Virus record (IMG/VR): IMGVR_UViG_3300036715_003906
Span: 124,001-188,000 of that record
Strand: one strand, 5' to 3'
Length of the DNA: 64,000 nucleotides
Shown: positions 4,533 to 37,943 of the stretch, piece after piece
Numbering within the stretch: the stretch's first letter is position 1
Layout of the letters: each line of letters starts with the position of its first letter
Translations under genes and position numbers: made by a program
The notes under the pieces: generated by a model
Told to the model about the DNA's origin: nothing
What the model saw: the letters and a program-made list of their open reading frames with translations, nothing else
Database searches by the model: none

Positions 4533-4835
4533 TCAGGCCGTGGGAACCATCCCCGCCGAGGGGGTCACGTCCACGAGGGCGTCGCCCAGCATCTCCTTGG
4601 CGAGGGCCATCGCGCCGTCGGCATCTTTCCGCAGGTGGGCCGCCAGGAAGGCACAGAGCTGCTTGTGGACCCCCGCGGGCTGCGGCAGATCCTCCGTCAC
4701 CATGATCCCGACCAGGTGCAGGAGGGAGAGGGCAGCGTACTTGACCCCCTCCCCGGTGCGGGGGATCTCGTTCTTGACGAGCACGTCCACGACCGCGTCG
4801 GACAGGTCGTCGATGATATCCGCCGTTTTTGTCAT
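4533..4835 (-). CDS. Hypothetical protein
   Basis: MTKTADIIDDLSDAVV...; coding-like codon usage, ATG 4835. Confidence 0.5.
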   Translation of the reverse strand: MTKTADIIDDLSDAVVDVLVKNEIPRTGEGVKYAALSLLHLVGIMVTEDLPQPAGVHKQLCAFLAAHLRKDADGAMALAKEMLGDALVDVTPSAGMVPTA

Positions 4836-4840
4836 GCCCG

Positions 4841-5088
4841 TCAGATACACCGACGGCGTCGACCTCACCGAAGGGAATCCCCCGCAAAAGATCGAGGGAA
4901 GGCAGACCCGGGGCCTCCACCCCCACCCCACGGAGCCGCGGGAAAGGGTCCTTCGCGTCCAGGACCCGCTCCAGCCGGGTCAGGAGACCCACGCGCGGGC
5001 CCTCCACGCTCACGAGAATCCGTGGGGTGGACAGGCTGCCGTCGGGACGATGGTCGGGGTATTCAAGGGCGATCTCGAGGCGCTTCAG
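4841..5088 (-). CDS. Possible small gene with a non-ATG (CTG) start or a damaged gene
   Basis: Coding-like run (L/M)KRLEIALEYPDHRPDG... begins at CTG 5088; there is no in-frame stop before the next gene. Confidence 0.25.
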
Positions 5089-5101
5089 GGCCCCGAGCCT
5101 A

Positions 5102-5725
5102 TCACAAACCGACGAACTGGCGGGGCGTGAGGACCCCGCCCCCGACGTAGGGACCGAAGGCCGAGCGGATGCCCGTGCCGTAGCGAGGCTGCTGGAGGCC
5201 GCGGATGATGTTGACCGTGGCCTTGGCCTTCTCGATTTGCTTGTCGAACTGCTCCTGGGCGCTTCCGGCCGCGGCCTCGTACTTGCTGGCCTTGTCGATG
5301 TCGAGCGATATACCCCCGATGGAATACGAGTTGTGGGCCAGAATGCCGTTGGTGAGAACGAAGTTCTCTGGCCCCGGCACACAGAGGTCGTACATCTCCC
5401 CCGTGTGAGGCACCTCCATGACAAGAGATACCGCCGTGGCACCCGTCGAGCCGTCCTTGACGGTGGTGACCAGCGACCCTGGCGTCAACTTCAACGTCGT
5501 GATGGGGGCGAAGGGGAGGGCTGCAAACAGACTGTGATCCTCGGTCGCCACCACGGAAGCCCCGGTCTCAAGCGTGACCTGAAGGGCTCGCTTATGCGGC
5601 ACCTGATGCTTCATCACGTCCTTGATGGGGAACCACCCTGAGTGCCCAGAAGCGTCCACCGCTTGGGTCGTGAGCAACCCTTGTCGGAAGGCGTCACGAA
5701 TATCACGTCGGGTTTGCTCATCCAT
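5102..5725 (-). CDS. Fractured neck/adaptor protein, piece 3: split-intein IntC-2 (132 aa) fused to a 75-aa C-extein
   Basis: GGAGG RBS. Intein block B (ATEDHSLF), block F (MYDLCVPGPENF) and block G (ILAHN/S) are followed by extein SYSIGGISLDIDK. No block A is present. Confidence 0.85.
   Translation of the reverse strand: MDEQTRRDIRDAFRQGLLTTQAVDASGHSGWFPIKDVMKHQVPHKRALQVTLETGASVVATEDHSLFAALPFAPITTLKLTPGSLVTTVKDGSTGATAVSLVMEVPHTGEMYDLCVPGPENFVLTNGILAHNSYSIGGISLDIDKASKYEAAAGSAQEQFDKQIEKAKATVNIIRGLQQPRYGTGIRSAFGPYVGGGVLTPRQFVGL
5330..5725 (-). mobile_element. Split intein 2, C-fragment (IntC-2)
   Basis: Ends His-Asn (Asn codon 5330-5332) with Ser+1; carries TxxH block B, so the split is atypical (short N, long C). 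Confidence 0.85.
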
Positions 5726-5850
5726 GACACGCCTCCAGAATTTCGGTCACAACCGCCGCAAGGTCACCCCTGATACGGTGTTCAGGCACACGAAGCACCC
5801 GCCAACCACGATTCAACAAGTAGGTTGTCTTTTGAAACGGCACCTTCAGG
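5718..5850 (-). pseudogene. Remnant of a Vsr/DUF559-like homing endonuclease (C-terminal ~40 codons, frameshifted)
   Basis: Alternative frame reads ...KD[+1 nt]YLLNRGWRVLRVPEHRIRGDLAAVVTEILEACHG*, matching the Vsr/DUF559 C-terminal GW.VLR..EH.I motif. It is AT-richer than the flanks and lies exactly between IntN-2 and IntC-2. Confidence 0.7.
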
Positions 5851-6619
5851 GAGTCTGTGGTTCGCCATCCCCATGCACGATAGCAAAAAGCTCTGCTATG
5901 GGCATGGAAACTCGTCGGCCATCTGGCAGCCCGACCGTGACTTCGGTTTCTGGGGCCACAGAAAATTCATCAGCAACCCAGTTGATCCGGAGGGCGTTGA
6001 GCGCCCAGAACATCGCCCCGGTGAGGAGGAGCGACTTCCAGGACGGGTACTGCGTGTAGAGCTGGTCGAGGCTCTGGAAGGGCGTCATCGGAGGGTAGAG
6101 CGAGATGGTGTTCATCGACTGCTCCAGGTACTCCTTCAGCTCCTCGTCGAGCCAGATGTACCCGAAGACGCGGTTGAACTGCCGGATCGTCTCCTCGTGA
6201 GCCGGGGGCCGAAAGTGGTAGTTCCTGTCGGGACTATTACTGACGACCATCCCCGAGCGATACAGCACGAAGTTGTGCCAATCTTCCGCCGTCAGGTCGT
6301 ACATATACTGCCGAGAGGGTAGTCGCTCGACCCCCAAAACAGAGACGGCAGATTCGACCCCGGCCACGGTACTACCGGTGGCAAGCTGTTCCGTTTCGAC
6401 CTTGCTTGTGGGGGTCACAAACACACGATGCCCCCCTGTGAGCACAGAAGACCCTTGTGGGGTAGTCACCCGAAGGATCGTCTCCGGGCCAACCTCCGCA
6501 CGGTGAACGTGAACGACCCTCTTCCACTCCGCTTGCCCGAGAGGAGAGAGGGACCGAACCTTCAACGTACCCCGCTTGAAGGCTGCTCGAAGCCGATTTT
6601 GCTGGTCAAGGGTCAACAT
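5846..6619 (-). CDS. Fractured neck/adaptor protein, piece 2: IntC-1 (128 aa) + 91-aa middle extein + IntN-2 (38 aa)
   Basis: GGAGAGAG RBS before ATG 6619. Block B (TGGHRVF), F (MYDLTAEDWHNF) and G (VVSN/S), then extein SPDRNYHFRPP...WVADEF, then block-A-like SVAPETEVTVGLPDGRRVSMPIAELF. The ORF track extends it in frame to 7162 through the endonuclease remnant. Confidence 0.85.
   Translation of the reverse strand: MLTLDQQNRLRAAFKRGTLKVRSLSPLGQAEWKRVVHVHRAEVGPETILRVTTPQGSSVLTGGHRVFVTPTSKVETEQLATGSTVAGVESAVSVLGVERLPSRQYMYDLTAEDWHNFVLYRSGMVVSNSPDRNYHFRPPAHEETIRQFNRVFGYIWLDEELKEYLEQSMNTISLYPPMTPFQSLDQLYTQYPSWKSLLLTGAMFWALNALRINWVADEFSVAPETEVTVGLPDGRRVSMPIAELFAIVHGDGEPQTP
5849..5962 (-). mobile_element. 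Split intein 2, N-fragment (IntN-2, Ser1, 38 aa)
   Basis: SVAPETEVTV...MPIAELF is a block A pattern with Ser at position 1; removing it joins DEF to SYSIGG of piece 3. Confidence 0.8.
6236..6619 (-). mobile_element. Split intein 1, C-fragment (IntC-1)
   Basis: Blocks B, F and G; ends Ser-Asn (Asn codon 6236-6238) with Ser+1. Confidence 0.85.
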
Positions 6620-7162
6620 GAACGTCTCTCTCCGTCCGGACGATGAAGTCCCACCCCATGCGGGTGGCCTAGGAAGAAGCTGCCTGAAGTCGTCGTTGTA
6701 CCTTGTCGTCAGCAGGCAGCCCGAGAACCCAACTAGCTTTGACCTCGATGAGCGCCAACGTACCCGAGAGGCCCTACCCTCTGGACGTTGAGCAGCAAGA
6801 CGAAGAACCTCACGCTCTTCGGCTGAACGAATACGTCCGCGATGGAAGTCGAACGCACCAGAAGCCCAAGCATCCCGCATTCGATCCGACAACCACGGTT
6901 TCGTCCTCCCCCTACCCGCTTGTCCCACAGCAACCGCATTTGCGGTCCGGTTCGCCCGTGATGCGGCATTCCCGGTCGCTTGAGTCAACCGTTGAATGGC
7001 GGCGAGGGATAGGCCCGTCATGGCCTTCCTCCGACCCCAAGTGGCCCCTGCTGCGTGAAGCTCAGTCACCACAGCGACCCGTTTTTCCTGCACCCCTGGA
7101 GGGGGTCGCCCTGATTTGCTGAAGGATACCCACGAAATTCCGTGTTTCGCCAGCAGGGACAC
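6606..7162 (-). pseudogene. Decayed TnsA-like / PD-(D/E)XK homing endonuclease
   Basis: A basic N-terminal DNA-binding-like part is in the ORF frame. Another frame (6773 to 6606) reads GTLALIEVKASWVL...DKVQRRLQAASS*ATRMGWDFIVRTERD, i.e. the IEVK...GW.F...TE.D motif with an internal TAG. The middle of the nuclease appears deleted. Lies between IntN-1 and IntC-1. Confidence 0.7.
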
Positions 7163-7166
7163 CCGA

Positions 7167-7664
7167 TCAGGGTGTGGGTTGCAGGGCTTCCCAGAGAGCC
7201 CGGATAGAAACTACCATTTTCTCTCCGTCCACGTCAAGCTCGACCTCTTCCTCTTCCCCGAGGCAGTTGTCCCGGAGGAGCGTCCGCAGCCGGTGGATGA
7301 GGTCCACTTCGTTCGGGGTGAAGAGGAGCGGGGCCTGCGAACCCGACACCACCTGATCGATGACCTCGAACTCCTGCACCACCTGCTGGAGCTGCCCCCC
7401 GACCAGCTCCCGGAAGGACCACCGCACGCGGTAGAGCCCGAGGTTGGCGTCGAGGGGGATCACGATGCTCGCGTAGTATTCCCCGAGGGCGGGGTTCGCC
7501 GGCACGCGGGCAGGGTTCCCCACCGGGGCCTCCAGACCCGTCGTCACGTCGGCGATGGCGTAGCTGATCTCGGCGGCATTGACCGGGAGGTCCGCCGCGT
7601 TGGCCAGGTAGATGTGCAGGTCCTGGCGGCCGAGCTGCTGCCCGCGGAAGAACGCGACGCCCAT
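7167..7664 (-). CDS. Fractured neck/adaptor protein, piece 1: 133-aa N-extein (Ig/BppU-like) + IntN-1 (32 aa)
   Basis: Ends ...LRTLLRDN/CLGEEEEVELDVDGEKMVVSIRALWEAL, an intein block A starting at Cys (codon 7263-7265) with no rest of the intein in this gene. Confidence 0.85.
   Translation of the reverse strand: MGVAFFRGQQLGRQDLHIYLANAADLPVNAAEISYAIADVTTGLEAPVGNPARVPANPALGEYYASIVIPLDANLGLYRVRWSFRELVGGQLQQVVQEFEVIDQVVSGSQAPLLFTPNEVDLIHRLRTLLRDNCLGEEEEVELDVDGEKMVVSIRALWEALQPTP
7170..7265 (-). mobile_element. Split intein 1, N-fragment (IntN-1, Cys1, 32 aa)
   Basis: Block A CL.....V......SI..LW pattern; 9 acidic versus 2 basic residues. Confidence 0.8.
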
Positions 7665-7667
7665 GGC

Positions 7668-8225
7668 TCAGTTCATCCAGGTGCTGTCGACGTGGTGCTC
7701 GCCCTTCAGCGTCTTGCTGATCTGGCGGACCCACGTCTCGACCTCCGCCGCGAACCCGAAGGTCTGCTCGGCCTGGAGTACCTTGCCGCGCGTGTCCTTC
7801 GGGCGGAAGTGGTCCACCTCGCTCGACGACCACTGTCGGAGGGCGTTCGACAGCATCGTGATCGCCCCCTCCCGTTGCGCCTTCTCCTCGCCACGGAAAC
7901 CCTTGCCGATAGCCGACCTGTACTCCTTGACGAGCTTCTCCCCCGCCGCCGCGGCCTTCTCCCCCAGGTCATGGATGTCCGCGTAGGCCACGTCAAACTG
8001 CTTCTGGACCTTGGCGCCGCCCTTGCCCTCCAGCTTCTTGCTGAGGTCGTTCACCTCGGCGAGCGCTTTCTTGAGGTCCTTGCCGCGTGCCTCGGACTCC
8101 TTGGCCGCGTGGTCGGCTGCCGCCGGCTTGACCTCGGACTTCCCACCCACGGGAGTCTTCTCCTTGGCTGTGAGGTCCAGGGCGATGAGGGTGCGAACCA
8201 GCAGACGATGCGCGATCAGGGTCAT
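7668..8225 (-). CDS. Hypothetical helical protein
   Basis: Start reassigned to MTLIAHRLL (ATG 8225); Lys/Ala/Glu-rich. Confidence 0.55.
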   Translation of the reverse strand: MTLIAHRLLVRTLIALDLTAKEKTPVGGKSEVKPAAADHAAKESEARGKDLKKALAEVNDLSKKLEGKGGAKVQKQFDVAYADIHDLGEKAAAAGEKLVKEYRSAIGKGFRGEEKAQREGAITMLSNALRQWSSSEVDHFRPKDTRGKVLQAEQTFGFAAEVETWVRQISKTLKGEHHVDSTWMN

Positions 8226-8248: not shown

Positions 8249-10363
8249 CTAAGAACCCCAGCCGTAGACCCGGCAGCGCCCCACCGGGTGACAGCCGGCG
8301 CGGGCCACGGCATCCTGCACCCGGAAGAGCTGCTCCGCCGCCTCGACCCCGGAGCACGGGGTACGGCGCCAGGACCAGACCACGACCCAGGCCCCCGGCT
8401 GACCGCACTCCCCGACCACCCCCGCGACGTGGTAGCAGCCCAGATCATCCTGAACCGGGGCACGAACCGCAGGCCCGATGAGCTGGCGCGTGCCGTCCGC
8501 CCGGACCTGGTAGAGCGCGTAGGAGAGCCACACAGGGGCCACAGGAGCCCCCGTGGCGTCGGTGAGGCACAAGGCCAGGTCTCCCGGCCCGAAGATCCCG
8601 CCCCACCCGAAGGGAGGCCCGGGGCACACCGGGGGGAGAACAGGCTGAAGAGGCCGGACCACCTCGACGTTGGCGACAAGGACGCCCACCCCCACCAGGG
8701 CCTCGGGGAAGTACCCGTAGAAGAACCCGGCCCCCGCGGCGTGACCTGCAACGAAGTGGAGGACACGGGGAGCGCCGTCGAGGACACTGTCCCCCGTGAT
8801 CTGCCCCGACCCCAGGAGCGGGGGCATGGCCAGAATGCCCTCCCCGAACACGTACCCCGAGGACAGGTACAGCTCCGCCGATGTCTTGATAGCTGCGAAC
8901 CCGAAGGTCTCCGCACTGAACCCCCCCTGCCCCAGCACGATCCTCGTCGTGAACGGGACCCCCAGAGCGGCCTCGCTCGGAATCCCCACGGCCCCCGCGA
9001 TGATGTCGATGTGCGCCGCCGGAGTCCCGACCGCCTCCTCACTGGGAACCCCCACGGGCCCCAGCAAGAAGGCGAGCGTCTCCAGGCCGAAGGCTTCCGC
9101 GCGGAGAGCCCCCTGACCGAAGAAGGTCATGTCAAGACGCCCGAGGCCGAAGGCTTCCGCGCTCGTGACGCCCACAGGGAGCCCGACCCGGATGGCCAGA
9201 GGCACCCCGAACGCGGCTCCTCCGGGAATCCCCGAGGGGCCCACCACGAAGGCCGAGAACGACGACCCGAAGGTCTCCGCGCTGACCGCGCCCGTGCCCC
9301 GCACCATCAAGCGCTCGAAGCCGACCCCGAAGGCTTGCCCGCTCAGCACCCCCTGCCCGAGCGGCACGGTGACCTGAAGGGGAATCCCTACCGCAGCCGC
9401 ACTCCCGACCCCCGTCGCAACCAGGCCGAGACGGATGGCCCCGAGGCCGCTCGTGAAGGCCGAGGGGGCCCCCTGGCCAAAGACCGTGAGCTGCTCGGTC
9501 GCCTGCCCCGACGCAAAGGCCCCAGGGATACCCGTGGGGAGCAGGTTGGCCGAGACCAGGGGCGTCCCAAGGGCGAGCCCCGATGGCACCCCCGACCCCA
9601 GAAGGGTGAGGCGCTCCGTGGCTGCCCCAGAGACAAAGGTACTCGCGGCGCCTTGCCCAAGAGGGAACAGCCTCTGGGTAGCGACACCGAAGGCTTGCGC
9701 CGGTGTCGCCCCGGGCGGGGACAGGTCCCGGCCCACCACGGCCTGGCCCGAGGCAAAGGCGCTTCCGGCCCCCGACCCGAAGACGGTGAGCTGCTCCGTG
9801 GCCGCACCGGCGGTGACGGCGCTCGCCGTCCCTTGGCCGAGAGGGATGAACCTCTGGGTCGCTGCCCCGAAGGCTTGCGCCGACAGCACCCCGGAGGGGG
9901 AGGCCACACGAACCGCGGTCGCCTGGCCCGAGGCAAAGGCACTCCCGGCCCCCTGCCCCAGTGCGCTACAGACCTCGGTCGCCGTCCCGGAAACGAACCC
10001 CGAGAGGACCCCCTGGGGCCCGAGGGCGCGCACGACGGTCGGGGTGCCGGCCGCCTGGGCCGAGGGCACCCCCGTGCCGAGCACCGTGAGCCTCTCGGTT
10101 GCGGCCCCGAAGGCTCCCGCACTGGGGGCCCCGGAGACCCGAGCGAGTCGGGTCGCCGAGGGCTGCCCGAAGGCCCCTCCGCTCGGGACACCCGCCCCGA
10201 GGACCGTGAGCCTCTCGGTTGCGGTGCCGAACGACTCCCCGCCCGCGACCCCGACGGCAAGGGGGATCAGGGCCACCGCGGCCTGACCAAAGGCCACGGC
10301 CGCCGCCACGCCCCGGGCGGCGAACGTGGTCGCTTCCGACAGGTCGAAGAGTAGGCGGCTCAT
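8249..10363 (-). CDS. Gly/Ala-rich repetitive virion (fibre-like) protein with a C-terminal Ig-like, Cys-rich domain
   Basis: Many imperfect G(V/I)PS..AFG repeats. A possible internal start exists at 8827 (GGAGG RBS, MPPLLGSG). Confidence 0.6.
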   Translation of the reverse strand: MSRLLFDLSEATTFAARGVAAAVAFGQAAVALIPLAVGVAGGESFGTATERLTVLGAGVPSGGAFGQPSATRLARVSGAPSAGAFGAATERLTVLGTGVPSAQAAGTPTVVRALGPQGVLSGFVSGTATEVCSALGQGAGSAFASGQATAVRVASPSGVLSAQAFGAATQRFIPLGQGTASAVTAGAATEQLTVFGSGAGSAFASGQAVVGRDLSPPGATPAQAFGVATQRLFPLGQGAASTFVSGAATERLTLLGSGVPSGLALGTPLVSANLLPTGIPGAFASGQATEQLTVFGQGAPSAFTSGLGAIRLGLVATGVGSAAAVGIPLQVTVPLGQGVLSGQAFGVGFERLMVRGTGAVSAETFGSSFSAFVVGPSGIPGGAAFGVPLAIRVGLPVGVTSAEAFGLGRLDMTFFGQGALRAEAFGLETLAFLLGPVGVPSEEAVGTPAAHIDIIAGAVGIPSEAALGVPFTTRIVLGQGGFSAETFGFAAIKTSAELYLSSGYVFGEGILAMPPLLGSGQITGDSVLDGAPRVLHFVAGHAAGAGFFYGYFPEALVGVGVLVANVEVVRPLQPVLPPVCPGPPFGWGGIFGPGDLALCLTDATGAPVAPVWLSYALYQVRADGTRQLIGPAVRAPVQDDLGCYHVAGVVGECGQPGAWVVVWSWRRTPCSGVEAAEQLFRVQDAVARAGCHPVGRCRVYGWGS

Positions 10364-12616: not shown

Positions 12617-13138
12617 TCACGTCGCCGCGTCGGTGAACTCGATCTCGAAGTCGTTGGTGCCCACGATGGTGACCCCCGAGTGGAAGACCTGGAACCCGAA
12701 CCCAGCCCGGCACACGATGGGCTCGATGTTGGTGTCCCCGTACCCGGCGTTCCATACCTCGGCGAAGGGCACGAGCAGCTCCCACTCATCCTGCGTGTTC
12801 GACGAGACCGTGGGCTCGTCGTTCGACCAGAGGAAGCGGCGGAAGATGTCGGTCCCGGTCGTGGTCTGGCCCGTCCCCGCGGTCGTGTTGACGTCGAGGG
12901 CCGGGCTGCTGGTGTCGTGCTTGACGGGAGTCACCGCGCTACCCGCCGAAGCGGCCGTGAGGCGCCGGATCTGCATGGTAGTGAGCACGCCGGTGACCGC
13001 CGTGACACCGTTGTTGAACTGGTAGGCCCGGAAAACCCTGATGACGCGGGTCGCGCTGGCCCCGTTCATCACGTTGATCATGTCCTTGGTGGCCGCAAAA
13101 GCCACACCGCCCGACGTCGCACGCCACGTTGCCGCCAT
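12617..13138 (-). CDS. Putative virion structural protein
   Basis: GAGG RBS before ATG 13138; VTPVKHDTS motif shared with 10898..12073. Confidence 0.6.
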   Translation of the reverse strand: MAATWRATSGGVAFAATKDMINVMNGASATRVIRVFRAYQFNNGVTAVTGVLTTMQIRRLTAASAGSAVTPVKHDTSSPALDVNTTAGTGQTTTGTDIFRRFLWSNDEPTVSSNTQDEWELLVPFAEVWNAGYGDTNIEPIVCRAGFGFQVFHSGVTIVGTNDFEIEFTDAAT

Positions 13139-13141
13139 GGA

Positions 13142-13465
13142 TAACCTCGTTCCGATGCTGATGATCTTGCGGTCCTCGGCGGGCCGCGGGGCCGAGAAGA
13201 GGAGCATGTCACCCTTGCCATCCCCACGATCCCCGACGACCCGCTGCTCGACGATGCCCGCCCGGAGGCGCTCGAGGGCTCCCTTCAGCTCGTCCCTCTT
13301 GGGCCCGGGAGTCAAGGTGCGGTAGCGGTCCACCTGACGGGGCAGGGCCCAGGCAATGACCCGTTTCAAGGCGGGAGCGGACAGGGTGGCCGGGACGTCG
13401 ACCATCCAGCCATCTTCCGCGGACCAATGGAGGCGAAGGGCGCGCATCTGTTGGTCCGGGGTCAT
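13142..13465 (-). CDS. Hypothetical protein (no canonical stop; in frame with the next gene)
   Basis: MTPDQQMRALRLHWS...; reads through TTA at 13142-13144 into 13138. Confidence 0.4.
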
Positions 13466-13468
13466 AAA

Positions 13469-13810
13469 TAAATCCGGCCGGGAAGGCAAGGCAAGGCAAG
13501 GCAAAGGGATGGTCTGCCCCGCGAGGGCGTGAGTGCAGTTGCTCAGGTAGACCAGGTTGCCCCCCTGAACGAAGGAGTGGCAGACGCGCCGCTCGTTGGA
13601 CTCCCCCCAGGTGTACTGGACCCGGATCGAGGGGGAGAAGGTCGGGGCCTCCTCGTTGCCGTCGAAGGACCCCTGAGGGCCACCGGGCGTCGCCGAGTTG
13701 TCCACCTGGATGCTGGGGTCCATGTCACAGCCGGGGCAGAAAAAGGACCCGCCCAGGGGGGCGTCCTCGCCCTGGGCCGTGCGGTACGTCGTGCGGTGGA
13801 TAACAGCCCT
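13469..13810 (-). pseudogene. DUF6527-like small Zn-binding protein, apparently damaged
   Basis: CPGC...PTFSPSI...CHSFV..G...YL.NCTH.LAGQT resembles DUF6527. AGG sits where ATG is expected, Pro/Gly replace usually conserved His/Trp, and there is no canonical stop. Confidence 0.5.
13485..13504. repeat. Pentanucleotide simple sequence repeat (GGCAA)x4
   Basis: Four perfect copies at the 3' end of the DUF6527-like ORF. Confidence 0.85.
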
Positions 13811-13857
13811 ACCCCACCCGGGGGATAAGCCATTCCTCGGGGTGGGACGCGAGACGG

Positions 13858-14265
13858 TCAGAGCTTGAAGATCCGGTTGGCCCCGTTGTCCCACTGGATG
13901 GCAACGTTGCCGCCCGAGGGGGTGAAGGGCACGCCCGTCATGGTGTCGAGGTAGGCGATGAGCTGGGCCGTCGCGTCCGTGCCGGTGTGCTTGTAGATCA
14001 GGACCGCACTGACCGTCGACCCGGTCACGAGCGAGAAGGTGACGTCGTCGGCATCCGCCACGCCCGCGGTGGCCGTCTTGGTGGTGAGCGACCCGCTCAC
14101 GGACACCCGAGCACCCCCCGGGACGTCGGTGAGGAACTGATCGGTCGTCAGGTTGACGGTGTAGGCACCGACATTGATGAGGATGCACCGCACGTCGTCG
14201 GTGAGCCAGTTGAGGGTGCCGTTGAGGTAGCCCTCACGGCCCTTGTCATAAAGAGCGTTCGCCAT
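13858..14265 (-). CDS. Minor virion / tail-associated protein
   Basis: MANALYDKGRE...L...GVADADDVTF..V...A.LIAYLD...P.GGNV.IQWDNG.N.IFKL, a recurrent small phage structural family. Confidence 0.65.
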   Translation of the reverse strand: MANALYDKGREGYLNGTLNWLTDDVRCILINVGAYTVNLTTDQFLTDVPGGARVSVSGSLTTKTATAGVADADDVTFSLVTGSTVSAVLIYKHTGTDATAQLIAYLDTMTGVPFTPSGGNVAIQWDNGANRIFKL

Positions 14266-24343: not shown

Positions 24344-25222
24344 TCAGAAGCGCTGGACCACCATGCGGGTGAGCGCGCGGGGGTTGAAGGCGCCGATGCC
24401 GACGTTCTCGAAGCACGAGAAGCCGATCGTGCGGGCCTTGGGGTCGTCCGCCGAGAGGACGGTCAGCTCGGTCCGTACGGGGAAGCGGCCGAAGTTCTCG
24501 GGCTCGCCACACACGTAGACAAAGCCGACCGGGACGAGGCGCGAGATGATGATCTGCGCACCCCAGAGGACGGCCTGCAACCCCGTCTTCAGCAGGCTCG
24601 CCTGGGACTCGATGTCCAGGATATCACGCCCGAACTTGCGGATGTCCGCGTAGTCGACGGCGTTGAGGTAGATGCGGGCGACCCGGAGGTCGTGCCGCTC
24701 GATCTCGGCGAAGGCGTCGGCGAGGACGCTCGGCGAGATGGGGGCGATGACGGCGACGTCGGGGTTCGTCTGGCCGGGCAGGGTGTCGAAGCCCGACACC
24801 GCGATGCTGTCGAGGACAGCGAAGACTCGCTCGTCCTCCATGGCCTGGATCTGGGCCTTGGCGAGATCCTGGGCGCGCTCGATCAGGTCGAAGCGCCGCT
24901 CCTTGATCTGCGTGAGCGGGATCTCGGGGTTCGAGGCCAGCTCGAAGAGGGGGAAGATGACCCGCTTCGGCTTCTGGACGGCGAGGATGTTCTGTCCCTC
25001 CTCGCCGACCACATAAGCCGTGACATCGGGGTCCTTGTCGTAAATCGGGAGCGCCCCATCGGGCAGCTCCTCGACCAGAAACGTCTTCCTCCCGACGGCG
25101 GTGTAGTCGCGCCGGAGGCGCAACGGTTGGATCATCGAGGCCGCGAGCTTCGCGCGGCCCGCGGCGGTCTTGATGTACTCCGAGATGATCTGCTGCTTGA
25201 CTTCGTTGGAGACCGGGTTCAT
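24344..25222 (-). CDS. Major capsid protein (HK97-fold)
   Basis: 292 aa; last gene of the protease-scaffold-decoration-capsid order; strongest codon bias; GAGGAAG RBS; C-terminal IGFSCFENVGIGAFNP. Confidence 0.85.
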   Translation of the reverse strand: MNPVSNEVKQQIISEYIKTAAGRAKLAASMIQPLRLRRDYTAVGRKTFLVEELPDGALPIYDKDPDVTAYVVGEEGQNILAVQKPKRVIFPLFELASNPEIPLTQIKERRFDLIERAQDLAKAQIQAMEDERVFAVLDSIAVSGFDTLPGQTNPDVAVIAPISPSVLADAFAEIERHDLRVARIYLNAVDYADIRKFGRDILDIESQASLLKTGLQAVLWGAQIIISRLVPVGFVYVCGEPENFGRFPVRTELTVLSADDPKARTIGFSCFENVGIGAFNPRALTRMVVQRF

Positions 25223-27327: not shown

Positions 27328-30093
27328 TCAGGCTCCGTTCCTCGCCATTCGCGGCGTGAGAGATGGATTATTGGTGCCCAGAGCATAAAGCCGACCCTTG
27401 TCGAGAAGGGTCTCCTGCTCCGAGGGCGTCAGGTTACGTCCGATGAGGGTGCGACAGGCCGTGACAAAGGCCGTGTCGTCGGGGTACGACGTCACGGAAC
27501 CTGCCGCGAGGACAGCACGATAGAGGCGGCTCTCGCCCGCCTGCGTGATCCGCTTGCTCGACTCCAGGAAGCGAGCCACCGCCAGTACCTCGGGGCCCGT
27601 GAGGCACCCCGCGGAACGTACAGCTTGCCATCCACCGGACTTGTAATGGATGAGGCCGAGCAGGACGTTCAGGGTACGTCCATGATCACGCCCCGTGGCG
27701 ACATGGACACGGTGCGCGAGGAGGCGCCACGAGGGATACCGGAGCGCTTCCTTGAGGAGCGTATTGTTCCGGTTCTCGTTCGGCCGAGGTCCAGGTTCGG
27801 GCTTCATCTCCTCCCGGACCTTGTCGACCGCACGTTGACGCAGGGCGTCCGCCAGCTCGTCCACGGCCTTGCTGGCCGGGTCCCCGGTGGGGGCAGGAGC
27901 GGGCTTCTTGTCCATCCCGTCGTCGAACCCCTGGCCCTGCTGTCCGGGCTGCCCCTGCTGCCCCTGGGCCGCAGGGAAGGAGGCAGCCTTGCCCATGGCG
28001 CCGGTGAGCATGACCCGGGGCCCACCCGAGAAGGCGATGCTCATCTTGCGGCCGAGGTCAGCGACCTCCTCGGGGTTCAGGATGTCCCGGAGGACGGCAC
28101 CCTCGAAGGCGGGGTTGGCGACCCACGACGCCTCGATGAACTTGACCGACCCGGGCTCGGCCAGGACGTGCCCGCACAGCTCGGCGATCTTCCGCTTGCG
28201 ACCCAGGGCATCGACGAACTCGTTGCCCTTGAAGTAGTGGATATGGTTGCAGAGCTGGGTCTCGTCGTAGGCGACGTTGCCGCAGGCCGTGCAGATCGTG
28301 AACTCGACCTGGCAGTTGGAGACCCCGAAGCCATGCACCTGATACGAGTGGTCTTCCTCGACCTCGATGTCGTGGACGAAGCCCTCGTACACGAAGGACT
28401 CGATGCGGGTGATCGGGAAGATGACCTTGTCGTCGAGTGCCCGGAGATGCGGGTGCTTTTTGCGAGAACCCTCGCGTGGGGACTTGTCGGACACCCCCAT
28501 CAACATCGCCGAAGACGATTGAGGGAAGTAGATGTTGAAGGCCGCGAGCTTGCCCGTCTCGTCGTGACGAAGTGCCTGCCCGTTCACCACGGCCTCGGCG
28601 AAAGTCACCGTTCGGCCCCCAAACACGCAGTCTGCCCACACCGGGATGCCGCCTCGTACCGCCAGCGTATGAAGCTGGCACATGAGGTCGTAGGAGGTGG
28701 TCGTACCCACCGAGTGCCCGCCGCTGTGCTTGTGACCGTCCCCGTTGAGCCAAGCCCCAAGCAAATGCGCCTGGGATTCGACTGACCACTGCATGGCCTC
28801 GGGGCTCAGACGCTTTTGGTGGGAGTACTCACCCCCATGCTGCTTGAACCAAGCGGCGATGCCCTTCCCCGAGACGTGTACCGTTGCCGTGTTACGGTCT
28901 TCACGGTCCTGTACCCAAGGGGCACAACCGGGGAACTCCTCGCGAAGAAGCCCAACAACCTCTTCAACGAAGGTCTCCTTCTCAGCCAAGGAGAAGTTGA
29001 ACTGCACCTCGGACGGCACACCCTTGCTCTTGATGAAGCTGCCTTCGGCCAGGAAGTACCCGAGGAGCCGAGCCTTGGCGGACCCTGGGTCACCGATCAC
29101 ATCAGAGTCGAGCTTCGGGAAGACCACATAGTCCCCCACTCGCAATTCGTCGGCACGAACCTTCTCGACCTTGAGGCTCTGGATCTCCGTGAGCTTCTCC
29201 TGGCGAGCCTTGTATTCGTCGAGGGAGTAGCTGCCGTTCGGGTTGAGCACACGCTTGTCATGACCCCCCTTGAACCGCTTGGTCATCCGACGAACGGGGT
29301 CAGCATCCTTCGTCGAAAGAGCCTCCCCACACCCACACCCGCAAACAGACGCCGGGCGGAGGACGAAGAACGGGTGTGTGCCTGTGGCCTCGACGGCATC
29401 CGGCACCCCCTTGACCTTGATCCGTCGCATCTGCCAGCGACCACCACGGATCTGCTGGTTCAGCACCTCGCGAGCCCTGCCCTTGTGGGTCAGAACCATC
29501 GCACCGGGTCGAACCTCTTCGATGGGGAGACGAGTGCCGTCGGCCATCGTGACGGGAGTCCCCGGGAGGAAACAGCCCATGCTGAGGGTCTTCAGCTCCC
29601 GCCGCTGGATCGAGGAGATCAGGGGGCGGAACTTCCGGGCCGTCGCGATCAGGATGTCGATGTAGATCGAGTCCCCGATGTCCCGGCTGGCGGCGTCCAG
29701 GATCTTGCCCTTGCTCAGCTCGGGGATCTGGACGTGCTCGACGTAGTTCTCCCCGCCGATGAAGGTCTTGAAGCACGCGAGGAGCAGCTTGCGCTCCCAG
29801 CAGTCGTTGTTGTTGTTGACGTACTTGGACGTCGCGGGCGTCACCAGCCAGTCGGGGTAGCGCCGGTCGACCTCGAAGCCGTCCACCATCTGACGACCGA
29901 CCGGCTCCGGGGACACCTCCGTGTCCACCGAAGCGACGATCGTGCAGTGCGTGAGCATGAACTCACTGGGGTCGTACTGGTCGAGTACGATCCGGGAGGC
30001 TTGCTTGTTCCCGTGGACCCGGAGGTTCTCCCACCCGGCCGACGAGATGTCGGGCTTGACAATGGTCGCGTTGGCAAACTTACGGAAGGCCAT
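27328..30093 (-). CDS. Prohead (capsid maturation) protease with an intein
   Basis: Head-module position; after intein removal reads ...TLSMG-CQVEFTICTACGN...LCNH...FIEASWV.NPAF.GA. Confidence 0.8.
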   Translation of the reverse strand: MAFRKFANATIVKPDISSAGWENLRVHGNKQASRIVLDQYDPSEFMLTHCTIVASVDTEVSPEPVGRQMVDGFEVDRRYPDWLVTPATSKYVNNNNDCWERKLLLACFKTFIGGENYVEHVQIPELSKGKILDAASRDIGDSIYIDILIATARKFRPLISSIQRRELKTLSMGCFLPGTPVTMADGTRLPIEEVRPGAMVLTHKGRAREVLNQQIRGGRWQMRRIKVKGVPDAVEATGTHPFFVLRPASVCGCGCGEALSTKDADPVRRMTKRFKGGHDKRVLNPNGSYSLDEYKARQEKLTEIQSLKVEKVRADELRVGDYVVFPKLDSDVIGDPGSAKARLLGYFLAEGSFIKSKGVPSEVQFNFSLAEKETFVEEVVGLLREEFPGCAPWVQDREDRNTATVHVSGKGIAAWFKQHGGEYSHQKRLSPEAMQWSVESQAHLLGAWLNGDGHKHSGGHSVGTTTSYDLMCQLHTLAVRGGIPVWADCVFGGRTVTFAEAVVNGQALRHDETGKLAAFNIYFPQSSSAMLMGVSDKSPREGSRKKHPHLRALDDKVIFPITRIESFVYEGFVHDIEVEEDHSYQVHGFGVSNCQVEFTICTACGNVAYDETQLCNHIHYFKGNEFVDALGRKRKIAELCGHVLAEPGSVKFIEASWVANPAFEGAVLRDILNPEEVADLGRKMSIAFSGGPRVMLTGAMGKAASFPAAQGQQGQPGQQGQGFDDGMDKKPAPAPTGDPASKAVDELADALRQRAVDKVREEMKPEPGPRPNENRNNTLLKEALRYPSWRLLAHRVHVATGRDHGRTLNVLLGLIHYKSGGWQAVRSAGCLTGPEVLAVARFLESSKRITQAGESRLYRAVLAAGSVTSYPDDTAFVTACRTLIGRNLTPSEQETLLDKGRLYALGTNNPSLTPRMARNGA
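28315..29574 (-). mobile_element. Intein (420 aa) with LAGLIDADG homing endonuclease
   Basis: CFLPGTPV (block A), ATGTHPF (B), LLGYFLAEG and LLGAWLNGDG (C, E), VHDIEVEEDHSY (F), VSN/C (G). Confidence 0.92.
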
Positions 30094-34568: not shown

Positions 34569-37500
34569 TTAGGCGCGGCGGGACTGGGGCGGGGGAAAGG
34601 GGACCGCCTTTGGCCGGGGCTTCGTCGAGGCAAAGCGGTTGCTGTCCTCCCCCTCGGCCGGCGGGGGGGTCAAGGTGAGACCGAGGCTCGTGGCGATCTT
34701 CTCCTTGACGTCCGACCCCTCGGCGAGCATCCGGCCCACTTCACCGTAGATGGCCCGCGTCACCTCGTTGAAGGTGGCGTCGTTGACGGTGAACATATCC
34801 TTTTCGAGCTTCTGCCGGGTGTCGTGCGGGTCGATGTTGAACATCTCCAGGATGACGTCGATCGAGACCGACCCCTTCTGGTACAGGTTGAACAGCGCGT
34901 CGAACGTGTCCTGGCTGTCCCGGAGCGGCAGGCGGGTGAAGCTGAGGGACGGGTAGAGGACCACTTCCTCGCCCCACTCGTCGAGTTCGATGAAGCCCTT
35001 GCGCCGGGCCACGGGCTTGAACAGGTACTCCTCGACGTACTCCTGCAAGATCTCCCGCAGAAACAGGTAGCGCTGGTTGATCACTTCGAGCTTGAGCCGG
35101 TCGCCCGAGTAGAGGGTCTCGCCCGAGAGAAGGCTCTCGGTCACGCCCAGGCCGGTGCGCAGGTGGCGCTCCGTGATCTCGTACTCCGAGGACAGGTCGA
35201 GGAGCCTGTCGCGGCTCCCCATCTCCTCCCAGTGCAGCTCGTAGTTGACGATGATCGAGTAGTCGGGGTCGACGAGGGCGTAGTCCACCTGATCGCGAAG
35301 GGCCTCGACGTCGTTTTCGCTGAGGTCGTCGGCCCAGATGATCCGCTTCGGGGTCATCGCCCGGCTGGCGATCTGGGTCTGCGCCTGGCGGAGCTTCTCC
35401 CGGTAGTACAGGGTGCGAAGGCAGTTGGAAGTACGCGAAAGTCCAGCGAAAAACGAGTGGTCTTCGTGGACGTTGAGGCTGTAGACCGGCCCCTCGTGCA
35501 TGGCCGTCGAGACCGATTGCACCCGGTAGAAGAGCTTCCCCTCGTGCTCGACGTGCCGTGACCCCGAGCGCCCGTCCTTCCACTCGTCAGGATCTTGCCG
35601 CTTGGCAAGGAAACCCGACTCGAAGAACGTCTTGACGGAAGGACCATGCGTAAAGTGAACGGAGTGCAAGGGCTTCGCCCAAGCCCTCTCTCCGTTCGCC
35701 TGCCTGACCCAACGTTCCTTCGTAGGCTTCGTCTTGGAGACCGGGATGCCGAGGGACGTGCAGAGCAAGAAAATCTGATCCATAAGCACATGGTTCGTAC
35801 CGTTGAACCGGACGCAGATGCTCCCGTCTTTCTTGCGGACGACATCCCCATCGGAGTCACAGAAACCTCGAAGGAGACCGAGCAAGAACCCCTTGTTGGC
35901 GTCGAAGACCCACGCGGGCAGGTGTTTGTCCTCGCTCGTGTGCCCGAAATTTGCGGCCATCCAACGCACGAGAGCGTCCTGGTAGCCGTCCATGTGGACC
36001 CCAGCCCCAGCATGGCTCTCCGACCACACGACCTTGAGCACGTCGAGCATCGGCTTGATCTGCTCTTGGATCGCCTTAACGGACGCGGGCTCGTTGGGGC
36101 CGTAGGTGAACCCGAGCGTACCGTAGTCGAGCCCCTCGTGCTTCGTGATGTGCCCGTCCCCGAGCCAGAAACCGAGGAAGTACCCGAAACCTGCAACCAG
36201 CGGGAGCACCCGCATGGGGAAGGTCTTGGTGTGGGCGGCGCTCGTCGGGGCTTTCAAGCCGGACTTGTTGGGCGGGAAGTTGAGGGTCTTGTCCTTGGCG
36301 ACCGTCACCCCGTACCCGAGCGACACGAGTTGGGACCGGATCTCCTTGAGCGTGACCGGATGAAGGCCGAAGCGTTCGCAGACTTCGGCCGAACGCATCG
36401 CCACGGGCTCCGTGAGCGTCGATGCCCATTCGAGGATGACGTTGAGGTCGTTGGTGCGACCGACCTTTCGAGGGTCCGTCTGTTCCTTCTCATACCTGAC
36501 CGTGAACGAGTGCGTCGTCCGGTCCACGACCTCCCAGCGAAGGTCTGAGGTACCTCCAGAGCGACGGGCACGGTAGTCGGCCTCGACCCCGTGCATGAAC
36601 TCCGCGAGATCGACGCCCCCAACCAACGAACCAGAAAGCGGGACCTGCGCGACCTGAAGGTAATCCCCAGCCCGGATGTCCTCCGCAGGAAGCTCGACCA
36701 CGGACCCGTCGCGAAGCACGGGGTACTTGTGGTCCTTCGTGCAGCCCACTGGCGGCTCGATCTTGGCGACGTGAAGAAGCGCGATCTCCTCCGCCACGGG
36801 ACGGACACCGACCTCGAACTCACGCCACGCCCCCGTGTGCGAAAGCACTCGATCCGTGTCGGGATCGAGATCCTCGATGTGGACTTGCCGAACCACCCCG
36901 TCCCGTTTCACGAGAACCGGGGTGCCTGCGATGTGGCAGCGGTCGAGGATGGACTGGCCCAGCTCGTCCCCCGCACCCTTCCGGGCCGAGAGCATGTGGA
37001 CGAAGGACCCCTCGTCCGGGTCGTCGCCGAGGGGGATCAGGTGCCCGTTCTCGATGTAGTCCCGGATCTCGGCAGGGATCTCCTCGACCATCTCCGACGC
37101 AATGGGGTCGCCCATCTTCGCCTGCTGGATGAGGGCCCGATCCCGGTCCGAGGGGATCAGCTCGACCCGCATCTTGTCCGAGAAGTCGAAGGTCGTGACC
37201 TTGACCTGGTCGATCGGGAAAATGATGATCCGGTCCCACCCCTTGTAGTGCTTCCGGTAGTAGGCGTCCTCCTCCTCCTCGCGGGTGTCCTTCTCCACCC
37301 TCTCGACGTCGTCGACCTCGCGGGCCCCGTGCTCGTCAACCACGCTGCGGCGGACCTTCTTGGGCTCGTAGCCGACGTCGTCAGGAAGCGGGACCTGGTG
37401 GTCCTCGGCGAAGATGGCGACGTTGCCGTCCAGCCAGTAGTGGCGGACGATGGTCGCCAGCCGCTGGAACAGCTTGACCTTCTTCGACATCTTCTGGAAG

Positions 37501-37943
37501 AAGGAGAGGATGTACTTGCCGTACTGCTCGGGGCTCGTGAAGCCCTCGGGGTGCGAGATGGGCTTCGGGGCCGCCAGTCGCACCTTCGACAACGGCAGCT
37601 CCGTGTGCAGGTCGATCGACTGCGCGACGATGGGCTCGGAGTTGTAGAAGTGCCGGTAGATCTCCCGCTTCTCGCGGAGAGACTGCGGCAGCTCCAGGAA
37701 GTCGGTCGAGAGCTGGGGGGAGAAGAAGGACCCGTTCTGGGCCAGACTCGTGTAGCCGCCCATGCCCCCGGCGTAGTTCGCCGTGCGGGTGTTCCCTGCC
37801 AGACCCTCGCGGCGAGCCCGACGCTCCAGGGGGGTCAGGGGCATCATCTGCACAGGGGACGCCACCCGGGGGTGGTTCCGACGCATGTGGGGGTCGAGGG
37901 CAGCCTGAACGGGCCGGGCCGAGGTGTAAGGGCGTGGGGGCAT
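34569..37943 (-). CDS. Portal protein with an intein
   Basis: Downstream of TerL; R...RHFY...PIV...IDL..ELPLS and YW..GN motifs; C-terminal L.F..L.L.D. GAGGAG RBS. Confidence 0.85.
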   Translation of the reverse strand: MPPRPYTSARPVQAALDPHMRRNHPRVASPVQMMPLTPLERRARREGLAGNTRTANYAGGMGGYTSLAQNGSFFSPQLSTDFLELPQSLREKREIYRHFYNSEPIVAQSIDLHTELPLSKVRLAAPKPISHPEGFTSPEQYGKYILSFFQKMSKKVKLFQRLATIVRHYWLDGNVAIFAEDHQVPLPDDVGYEPKKVRRSVVDEHGAREVDDVERVEKDTREEEEDAYYRKHYKGWDRIIIFPIDQVKVTTFDFSDKMRVELIPSDRDRALIQQAKMGDPIASEMVEEIPAEIRDYIENGHLIPLGDDPDEGSFVHMLSARKGAGDELGQSILDRCHIAGTPVLVKRDGVVRQVHIEDLDPDTDRVLSHTGAWREFEVGVRPVAEEIALLHVAKIEPPVGCTKDHKYPVLRDGSVVELPAEDIRAGDYLQVAQVPLSGSLVGGVDLAEFMHGVEADYRARRSGGTSDLRWEVVDRTTHSFTVRYEKEQTDPRKVGRTNDLNVILEWASTLTEPVAMRSAEVCERFGLHPVTLKEIRSQLVSLGYGVTVAKDKTLNFPPNKSGLKAPTSAAHTKTFPMRVLPLVAGFGYFLGFWLGDGHITKHEGLDYGTLGFTYGPNEPASVKAIQEQIKPMLDVLKVVWSESHAGAGVHMDGYQDALVRWMAANFGHTSEDKHLPAWVFDANKGFLLGLLRGFCDSDGDVVRKKDGSICVRFNGTNHVLMDQIFLLCTSLGIPVSKTKPTKERWVRQANGERAWAKPLHSVHFTHGPSVKTFFESGFLAKRQDPDEWKDGRSGSRHVEHEGKLFYRVQSVSTAMHEGPVYSLNVHEDHSFFAGLSRTSNCLRTLYYREKLRQAQTQIASRAMTPKRIIWADDLSENDVEALRDQVDYALVDPDYSIIVNYELHWEEMGSRDRLLDLSSEYEITERHLRTGLGVTESLLSGETLYSGDRLKLEVINQRYLFLREILQEYVEEYLFKPVARRKGFIELDEWGEEVVLYPSLSFTRLPLRDSQDTFDALFNLYQKGSVSIDVILEMFNIDPHDTRQKLEKDMFTVNDATFNEVTRAIYGEVGRMLAEGSDVKEKIATSLGLTLTPPPAEGEDSNRFASTKPRPKAVPFPPPQSRRA
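35424..36938 (-). mobile_element. Intein (505 aa) with LAGLIDADG homing endonuclease
   Basis: CHIAGTPV (A), CTKDHKY (B), FLGFWLGDG and LLRGFCDSDG (C, E), VYSLNVHEDHSF (F), TSN/C (G). Confidence 0.92.

Follow-up and report, generated by a model that had tools for sequence, protein, structure and literature searches.

Two predicted atypical split inteins in a doubly fractured gene of a huge phage

Introduction

How is a small phage protein made when its gene lies in three pieces? The question is raised by a locus in IMG/VR virus record IMGVR_UViG_3300036715_003906, which is 251,474 bp in length and belongs to a huge phage. The window analyzed here is a 64 kb stretch of this record, and all coordinates are window positions. 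Three genes on the minus strand each encode part of one 299-amino-acid (aa) protein, together with pieces of inteins. The sequence points to a doubly fractured gene whose product would be ligated from three separately made pieces by two split inteins. We give this reading a probability of roughly 0.8.

Organization of the locus

Gene 1 (7167-7664, 165 aa, TGA stop) is composed of extein 1 (7266-7664, 133 aa), with the C-terminal end ..LLRDN, and an N-terminal intein piece, IntN-a (7170-7265, 32 aa), that begins with Cys1. Gene 2 (5846-6619, 257 aa from ATG 6619, TGA stop) is the middle piece. It starts with a C-terminal intein piece, IntC-a (6236-6619, 128 aa), that ends in VVSN. Extein 2 follows (5963-6235, 91 aa), with Ser at the +1 position, and runs from SPDRNY to ..ADEF. 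The gene closes with IntN-b (5849-5962, 38 aa), which begins with Ser1. Gene 3 (5102-5725, 207 aa, TGA stop) is made up of IntC-b (5330-5725, 132 aa), ending in LAHN, and extein 3 (5105-5329, 75 aa), which has a +1 Ser and starts with SYSIGG. A preliminary description of this DNA had proposed three genes and two split inteins. That part stands, and the translations reproduce its piece lengths (32; 128 + 91 + 38; 132 + 75 aa), its Cys1 and Ser1 residues, and its VSN/S and AHN/S endings. It overlooked two decayed homing endonuclease genes (HEGs) in the spacers.

The frame that holds gene 2 is open from 7201, and an open reading frame (ORF) of 438 aa is obtained if counting begins at GTG 7162, the first start codon. 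These extra 181 aa upstream of gene 2 exist because the decayed endonuclease gene at the first break, HEG-a, is fused in frame to gene 2. A GGAG-type Shine-Dalgarno sequence precedes ATG 6619 and GGAGG precedes ATG 5725; none is found before GTG 7162. ATG 6619 is the same start position as in every homologous IntC-a gene. A promoter and terminator scan of 4800-8000 returned no promoter-like site and one terminator-like site, which was unconvincing. Since the locus contains no promoter or convincing terminator, co-transcription is likely, and the three genes are most likely co-transcribed and separately translated. G+C content drops from ~69% to ~59% over 5200-7300, which fits horizontally acquired inserts.

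The joined product and its family

Joined in silico, exteins 1, 2, and 3 give a protein of 299 aa and about 33 kDa. Over positions 1-299 it aligns with zero gaps to positions 1-299 of P0008, P0003, P0005, P0006, and P0007, at 75-77% identity (E ~1e-170 to 1e-178). The seamless 299-aa product that had been proposed is borne out by these contiguous homologues, which span both junctions. Extein 2 as a query returned 454 matches, many of them 297-299 aa long, and extein 1 has 175 relatives at E<=1e-3. Intein-free homologues read RDN-NPDRNY at the first junction (site a) and DEF-DYSIGG at the second (site b). Their +1 residue is mostly Asn at site a or Asp at site b, and in intein-bearing alleles it is Ser, rarely Thr. 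Both intein sites lie within the most conserved motifs of the family, as is typical of homing targets. Site a is in the loop after helix 117-130, and site b is at the start of the hairpin at 225-234.

The state of each site was scored in 270 fetched homologue proteins, 116 of which are intein-free. Other members are split at site a only (extein 1-IntN-a; IntC-a-extein 2-extein 3), are split at site b only (extein 1-extein 2-IntN-b, e.g., P0002), or are the middle pieces of double-split genes (P0026, P0037, P0061). Contiguous intein a is found in P0097 and P0122, contiguous intein b in P0028, P0117, and P0133, and P0175 has both inteins contiguous. A separate census covered 51 IMG/VR viral loci. 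Both sites are empty in 30 of these, 11 are split at a only, 3 are split at b only, 2 have a contiguous intein b only, and 2 combine a split a with a contiguous b. The remaining 3 are doubly split, namely L010 (the window's own contig), L040, and L050. Extein 2 identity to the window is 63% in L040 and 54% in L050, and the double fracture is therefore not a one-off.

The closest relative by extein 2 identity (88%) is L009 (P0002; L009:2146-4469). Its site a has no intein and keeps Ser at +1 (RDN-SPDR), perhaps as a trace of precise intein loss. Site b of L009 is split and has an intact Vsr-like endonuclease gene.

Intein motifs and constraint

The residues of class 1 inteins are present in both inteins: a nucleophile at position 1, TxxH, the block F Asp, the terminal Asn, and a +1 Ser. 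Both IntC pieces contain block B (TGGH in IntC-a, TEDH in IntC-b), block F (YDL), and block G. With pieces of 32/128 and 38/132 aa, the splits are of the short-N/long-C type, as first described. The Pfam family Intein_splicing (PF14890) matches IntC-a at E 1.6e-5 (25.2 bits) and IntC-b at E 1.3e-7 (32.0 bits). These scores fall under the gathering score of 35.8 because only the C-terminal blocks (F-G) match.

In the 168-aa Pho RadA mini-intein, residues 78-166 align with IntC-b (E 1.8e-6). Residue 45 of IntC-b pairs with Pho RadA intein residue 78, which puts the split near intein residue 35. For IntC-a, the alignment (E 0.005) covers residues 69-167 of the 186-aa MJ0781 chain 2jmz, which is the Mja KlbA intein. 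In these alignments, block B of IntC-a lies on block B of 2jmz and block B of IntC-b on that of the Pho RadA intein. The breaks are thereby placed ~32-38 residues into what would be inteins of ~160-170 aa, an atypical N-proximal position rather than the canonical one at ~residue 100.

Among the homologues, all site-a inteins have Cys1 straight after ..LRD(N) and end in N/S. All site-b inteins have Ser1 and end in HN/S or HN/T. The penultimate residue is His in intein b and Ser in intein a. IntC-a and IntC-b are 32% identical (E 2e-14), and a comparison of IntN-a with IntN-b detected no similarity. In other phages both sites hold contiguous mini-inteins. The claim that two different inteins are involved is upheld by these results. 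The two appear related yet distinct, and mutual orthogonality is plausible. IntN-a has a net charge of -7, against +6 in the first 45 residues of IntC-a. A hidden Markov model (HMM) of the family's IntC found no further copies in the six-frame translation of the window. This HMM was contaminated by two intein-free sequences, and its match to gene 1 is an artefact.

Are these pieces still at work? The locus could be a decaying relic in which the inteins no longer splice and the protein pieces are non-functional or assemble non-covalently, with the intein halves as docking modules. Docking of this kind is described for a fragmented phage ribonucleotide reductase (PMC3045599). Signs of decay are present, as both endonuclease genes are already pseudogenes and intein a has no penultimate His. 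The splicing residues tell otherwise: neither the window nor any diverged allele has lost Cys1 or Ser1, TxxH, the block F Asp, the terminal Asn, or the +1 Ser, and the last two would be dispensable for docking without splicing. Compared with L002, the proportion of nonsynonymous differences (pN) is far below that of synonymous differences (pS) in IntN-a, IntC-a, IntN-b, and IntC-b, which indicates that the intein pieces are under purifying selection. The extein is highly conserved and single-copy in the window and in each locus read, and it belongs to a large phage family. The double-split layout has also been kept in lineages with only 54-70% extein 2 identity. A relic is an unlikely explanation of this pattern.

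Some observations count against trans-splicing all the same. The Ser before the terminal Asn of intein a replaces a His, so that one common catalytic helper is missing, and the same is seen in all site-a alleles with the VSN ending. Charge complementarity is small at site b, where IntN-b carries -4 and IntC-b +1. The dN/dS values of the intein pieces, ~0.15-0.20 and similar to those of the exteins, are rough and indicative, as dS is saturated. The evidence is DNA only, from the window and from Logan contigs. A second, unbroken copy of the 299-aa gene was not found in the window, which covers 64 kb of the 251-kb genome.

The homing endonuclease genes

HEG-a (6620-7189, minus strand) is a pseudogene of a TnsA-like, PD-(D/E)xK homing endonuclease. 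It was recognized by tblastn with intact relatives and by DNA comparison with L002. Queried with the intact 311-321-aa HEGs of L003, L004, and L005, tblastn finds aa 5-191 at 7189-6656 (50% identity, E 3e-57). The 3' part, made up of the last ~47 codons (aa 257-303), lies at 6764-6624 in another frame. The ~190 N-terminal codons are in frame with gene 2, and an internal deletion of ~330 nucleotides (nt) took the nuclease core.

HEG-b (5721-5868, minus strand) is the remnant of a Vsr/DUF559-like homing endonuclease gene, identified by Pfam DUF559, tblastn, and DNA comparison. The leftovers are the first 16 codons (5868-5821), which overlap the end of gene 2, and the last 38 codons (5834-5721), which overlap the start of gene 3. 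The intact HEG-b of L002 matches them by tblastn at 84% identity for aa 276-313 and 69% for aa 1-16. Comparison with L009 and L002 shows a deletion of ~785 nt whose junction lies near 5831/5832. A 41-aa ORF at 5718-5843 matches Pfam DUF559 (E 9e-4). Judged from these remnants, both free-standing homing endonuclease genes are dead in the window and the split state is kept.

In the double-split relatives L002/L003, L004, and L005, full-length endonuclease ORFs separate the three genes. Intact HEG-a relatives are 311-321 aa long, and their C-terminus matches Tn7_TnsA-like_N (PF08722) at 27.8 and 31.1 bits against a gathering score of 26.5. Intact HEG-b relatives are 313-319 aa long and match DUF559/Vsr at up to 32.2 bits against a gathering score of 20.6; the L004 copy is cut by the contig end. 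The intact HEG-a and HEG-b genes of these relatives overlap the downstream IntC gene. Besides L002-L005, an intact endonuclease lies between the halves in L009, L040, and L050. Similar endonuclease loss with the split retained is seen in L017, L034, and L055. The site-a HEG (L005:3090-4025, L003:3085-4023, L004:3058-4023) has an N-terminal helix-turn-helix (HTH)-like region, which may bind DNA, and a C-terminal TnsA-like PD-(D/E)xK domain. The HTH_7 match is weak in the L004 gene (E 0.052).

The remnant of HEG-a bears on whether intein a is split at all. If ribosomes read through the gene 1 stop, or made a programmed +1 frameshift there, gene 1 would be joined to the 438-aa ORF, and intein a would then splice in cis from one precursor. 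The spacing allows for this, with 4 nt between the gene 1 stop (7167-7169) and GTG 7162, and with a downstream frame that stays open from 7201 to the end of gene 2 and holds the HEG-a remnant in frame with IntC-a. No slippery site or stimulatory structure was noticed, in an analysis that made no search aimed at them. In relatives whose HEG-a is intact, the three genes overlap but are clearly separate and lie in different frames, and the in-frame fusion stems from the ~330-nt deletion, which is peculiar to the window lineage. ATG 6619 has its own Shine-Dalgarno sequence, as noted above. Readthrough is impossible at site b, where every frame contains stops between gene 2 and gene 3. A single cis-splicing precursor for intein a is very improbable on these grounds, and translation of two separate halves is the preferred reading.

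Reproducibility of the sequence

Logan DNA contigs from four runs, representing four samples and four studies, were compared with window 4900-7900. Wherever they cover the window, the contigs match it without indels, and jointly they bridge both fracture points. The gene 1 stop and next ORF start (7160-7170) are bridged by X3 (7013-7263), X4 (7153-7347), and X2 (6905-7198). The gene 2 stop and gene 3 start (5720-5850) are bridged by X1 (5068-6184), X3 (5638-5892), and X2 (5753-5903). The source is a metagenome-assembled contig from a microbial-mat sample, with frames that change at both breaks, as would be expected of two contiguous inteins broken by sequencing or assembly errors. This explanation is rejected since independent contigs of four runs are identical across both breaks, and in dozens of related loci the splits fall at these points with entire endonuclease genes in between. 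The anatomy, homology, and conservation described above are likewise direct observations. Misassembly had been named at the outset as a danger to the reading, and the split state is reproduced in independently assembled samples.

The same metagenomes contain an intein-free allele of a related phage (X1, X2, X4; 6171-6232 and 7350-7747). In translation, a loose end at 6223 reads ..LLRDNNPDR, and positions 6232 and 7350 are joined in X2. Empty and occupied alleles thus co-occur in the community, as would be expected of inteins that move within the population.

Proposed history and splicing mechanism

In the proposed history, the 299-aa gene would have been invaded at two very conserved sites (a, RDN/NPDRNY; b, DEF/DYSIGG) by two related, distinct class 1 mini-inteins. 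A free-standing homing endonuclease gene would then have interrupted each intein at ~32-38 residues from the N-terminus, the gene being TnsA-like at site a and Vsr/DUF559-like at site b. Both endonuclease genes would later have decayed through internal deletions while the split state stayed.

Expressed as three polypeptides, the pieces would find each other through their intein halves. The acidic 32-aa IntN-a is predicted to dock on the basic N-terminal part of IntC-a, and IntN-b on IntC-b, completing two HINT folds. Two trans-splicing reactions would follow, Cys1...Asn/Ser+1 at site a and Ser1...His-Asn/Ser+1 at site b. Exteins 1, 2, and 3 would be ligated into the 299-aa protein, and four intein fragments would be freed. 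The evidence leans toward a broader reading as well. According to it, an essential virion protein of a huge-phage lineage would be obligatorily built by natural three-piece trans-splicing through two orthogonal atypical split inteins, with IntN pieces of 32 and 38 residues and Ser at both junctions of one intein, and this would have persisted after endonuclease loss.

Identity of the protein and gene context

By its gene content, the window is judged to be the morphogenesis region of a huge phage. It encodes a large terminase (39650-41635), a portal (34569-37943, minus strand; 1124-aa ORF, phrog_16240, E 1.6e-19), and a major head protein (24344-25222, E 3e-50). The 299-aa gene is downstream of all three. 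Just upstream of gene 1 is a repeat-rich ORF (8249-10363, minus strand, 704 aa) that resembles a minor tail protein. The tail genes of this phage are outside the window or unrecognized.

The 299-aa protein is very likely a virion structural protein. The preliminary description had made it a neck or adaptor protein from the gene neighborhood. This remains plausible: phrog_17327, a 'head-tail connector', is weakly matched by 32 of 38 family members (best E 1.2e-4), and the gene position is downstream of the capsid gene. Annotated phages were matched by tblastn in four records: Tunturi_5 gp319, one 485-kb uncultured phage, and Bacillus phage G gp165 (two records). Gp319 of the Tunturiibacter jumbo phage Tunturi_5 (30% identity, 93% coverage, E 6e-30) is annotated as 'head-tail connector protein' and lies just upstream of the tail terminator and sheath genes. 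Its annotation derives from Phold and is structure-based, not experimental. Leads from ESM-Atlas include Mu gp36, T4 gp13, gp6-like connectors, and the SU10 adaptor, with scores of 0.82-0.88. Matches in BFVD are uncharacterized phage proteins and Bacillus phage G gp165.

Two AlphaFold models were made. The first used 38 sequences, 3 rows of which bear IntC, and has a predicted local distance difference test (pLDDT) score of 66.8. The better one used 110 contiguous homologues and has a pLDDT of 79.0. In this model, residues 1-102 form an N-terminal beta-sandwich and residues 117-261 a helical domain that includes a beta-hairpin; the C-terminal tail is disordered.

Comparison with solved structures and profiles leaves the connector label tentative. 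A PDB fold search gave nothing below E 1e-3. The best match to an adaptor complex is 8gtd_M, a portal-adaptor chain, at E 4.6e-3 and a template modeling (TM) score of 0.26-0.39, and BppU-like baseplate proteins match the N-terminal beta-sandwich about as well. Apart from the weak 8gtd_M match, only this beta-sandwich of the two models is matched in the PDB, by generic Ig-like, complement MG-domain, and BppU-type folds. The family profile had no match at E<=10 among all PDB sequences. Searches of Pfam and PHROGs with the three exteins and the whole family gave nothing significant, and no Pfam match. From phrog_17327, the Phold label of Tunturi_5, and the gene position, a head-tail connector is slightly favored.

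The extein 1 beta-sandwich also occurs elsewhere. The C-terminal ~110 residues of ORF 8249-10363 (8285-8620, minus strand) are homologous to it at 28% identity (E 6e-8), and the domain is duplicated or embedded in far larger proteins, such as P0126 and the 5362-aa P0150. Just upstream of the 299-aa gene, relatives encode PF23140 'podophage GP4 fiber I protein gp80' domains at E ~1e-38 (L001:7256-7642, 8855-9238; L004:163-546; L005:698-1081). This suggests that fibers or whiskers are encoded beside the connector-like gene. L001 also encodes a Volactin-family protein.

Other genes of the window appear to be intein-bearing. The portal ORF 34569-37943 carries a contiguous intein with a LAGLIDADG domain (Pfam LAGLIDADG_3, Intein_splicing) and is a second intein-invaded virion gene of the phage. 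ORF 27328-30093 (minus strand, 921 aa) has Hom_end_hint / Hint_2 at aa 174-229 and weak Intein_splicing matches, and is probably a third intein-bearing gene. ORF 49758-51236 (minus strand) encodes a DNA polymerase III delta'-like clamp-loader subunit (PF13177, E 4e-22), and ORF 12617-14188 (minus strand) a 523-aa protein with DUF6527. The two are in keeping with a large phage that encodes replication genes of its own.

Implications

If splicing is real, engineered tandem trans-splicing has a natural counterpart in this locus, and the two inteins are by implication orthogonal in the infected cell. Two members would be added to the very short list of natural short-IntN split inteins, one of them with Ser/Ser junction nucleophiles. 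Such inteins are valued for labeling with synthetic peptides, and the locus is of interest to intein and phage specialists as a potential source of two of them. The family would capture the whole intein and endonuclease life cycle at two sites: empty, mini-intein, split with a live endonuclease, and split with a dead endonuclease. It would be well suited to studies of the origin of split inteins and of the reasons for their persistence. Should trans-splicing be obligatory, virion assembly would depend on two protein ligations and might be gated by them.

Comparison with known systems

Fractured genes were described by Dassa et al. 2009 (NAR, PMC2677866) at 26 loci, in DNA synthesis and repair enzymes and terminase, with one fracture each. 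One terminase intein was 'fractured at an unusual point' and has a 122-aa IntC. The same work introduced the Vsr-like endonuclease family, listed GIY-YIG and Vsr-like endonucleases, with one locus lacking an endonuclease, and noted opposite charges between the halves of other split inteins. As in those loci, a conserved gene is split into ORFs with intein halves, here twice in one gene; a Vsr-like endonuclease is involved, here at site b; and the 3' end of the endonuclease gene overlaps the downstream IntC gene. The decayed endonuclease genes tie the locus directly to this fractured-gene arrangement. Unlike those loci, a small structural protein is broken twice and both splits are N-proximal. 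One endonuclease is TnsA-like, and both endonuclease genes are decayed in the window.

The natural atypical split inteins AceL-TerL (25/104 aa), GOS-TerL (37/115 aa, Ser1), and Cat-TerL (30/104 aa) are found in the large terminase subunit, have Cys at +1, and are of phage or metagenomic origin (PMC11766414). By sizes and split position, the inteins described here are of the AceL-TerL type, with a very short IntN that lacks block B and an IntC of >100 aa with blocks B, F, and G. Intein b shares Ser1 with GOS-TerL. They differ from the TerL inteins in their pieces and nucleophiles (32/128 aa, Cys1/Ser+1; 38/132 aa, Ser1/Ser+1) and in their host protein.

Actinobacteriophage minor capsid proteins contain inteins with out-of-frame or antisense endonucleases, including Vsr-like ones (bioRxiv 10.1101/2025.01.02.630785). 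Non-canonical endonucleases and a non-enzymatic virion protein are common to both systems. The inteins are contiguous there, whereas the gene is doubly split here.

In engineered tandem, or three-segment, trans-splicing, three polypeptides are joined by two orthogonal split inteins (PMC7210297, PMC12707363). The middle piece starts with an IntC and ends with an IntN, as gene 2 does. Unlike these designs, the present layout occurs in nature and is found repeatedly in diverged phages, and the protein presumably cannot function without it.

Split inteins, fractured genes with free-standing endonucleases, and N-proximal splits are all known, and no new principle is involved. Neither a natural protein with two split inteins nor a description of the 299-aa family turned up in the open-access literature, in line with the earlier statement that a doubly fractured virion protein was unreported. 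What appears to be new, and was not found in that literature, is one small structural protein that is cut twice and would depend on two different atypical split inteins.

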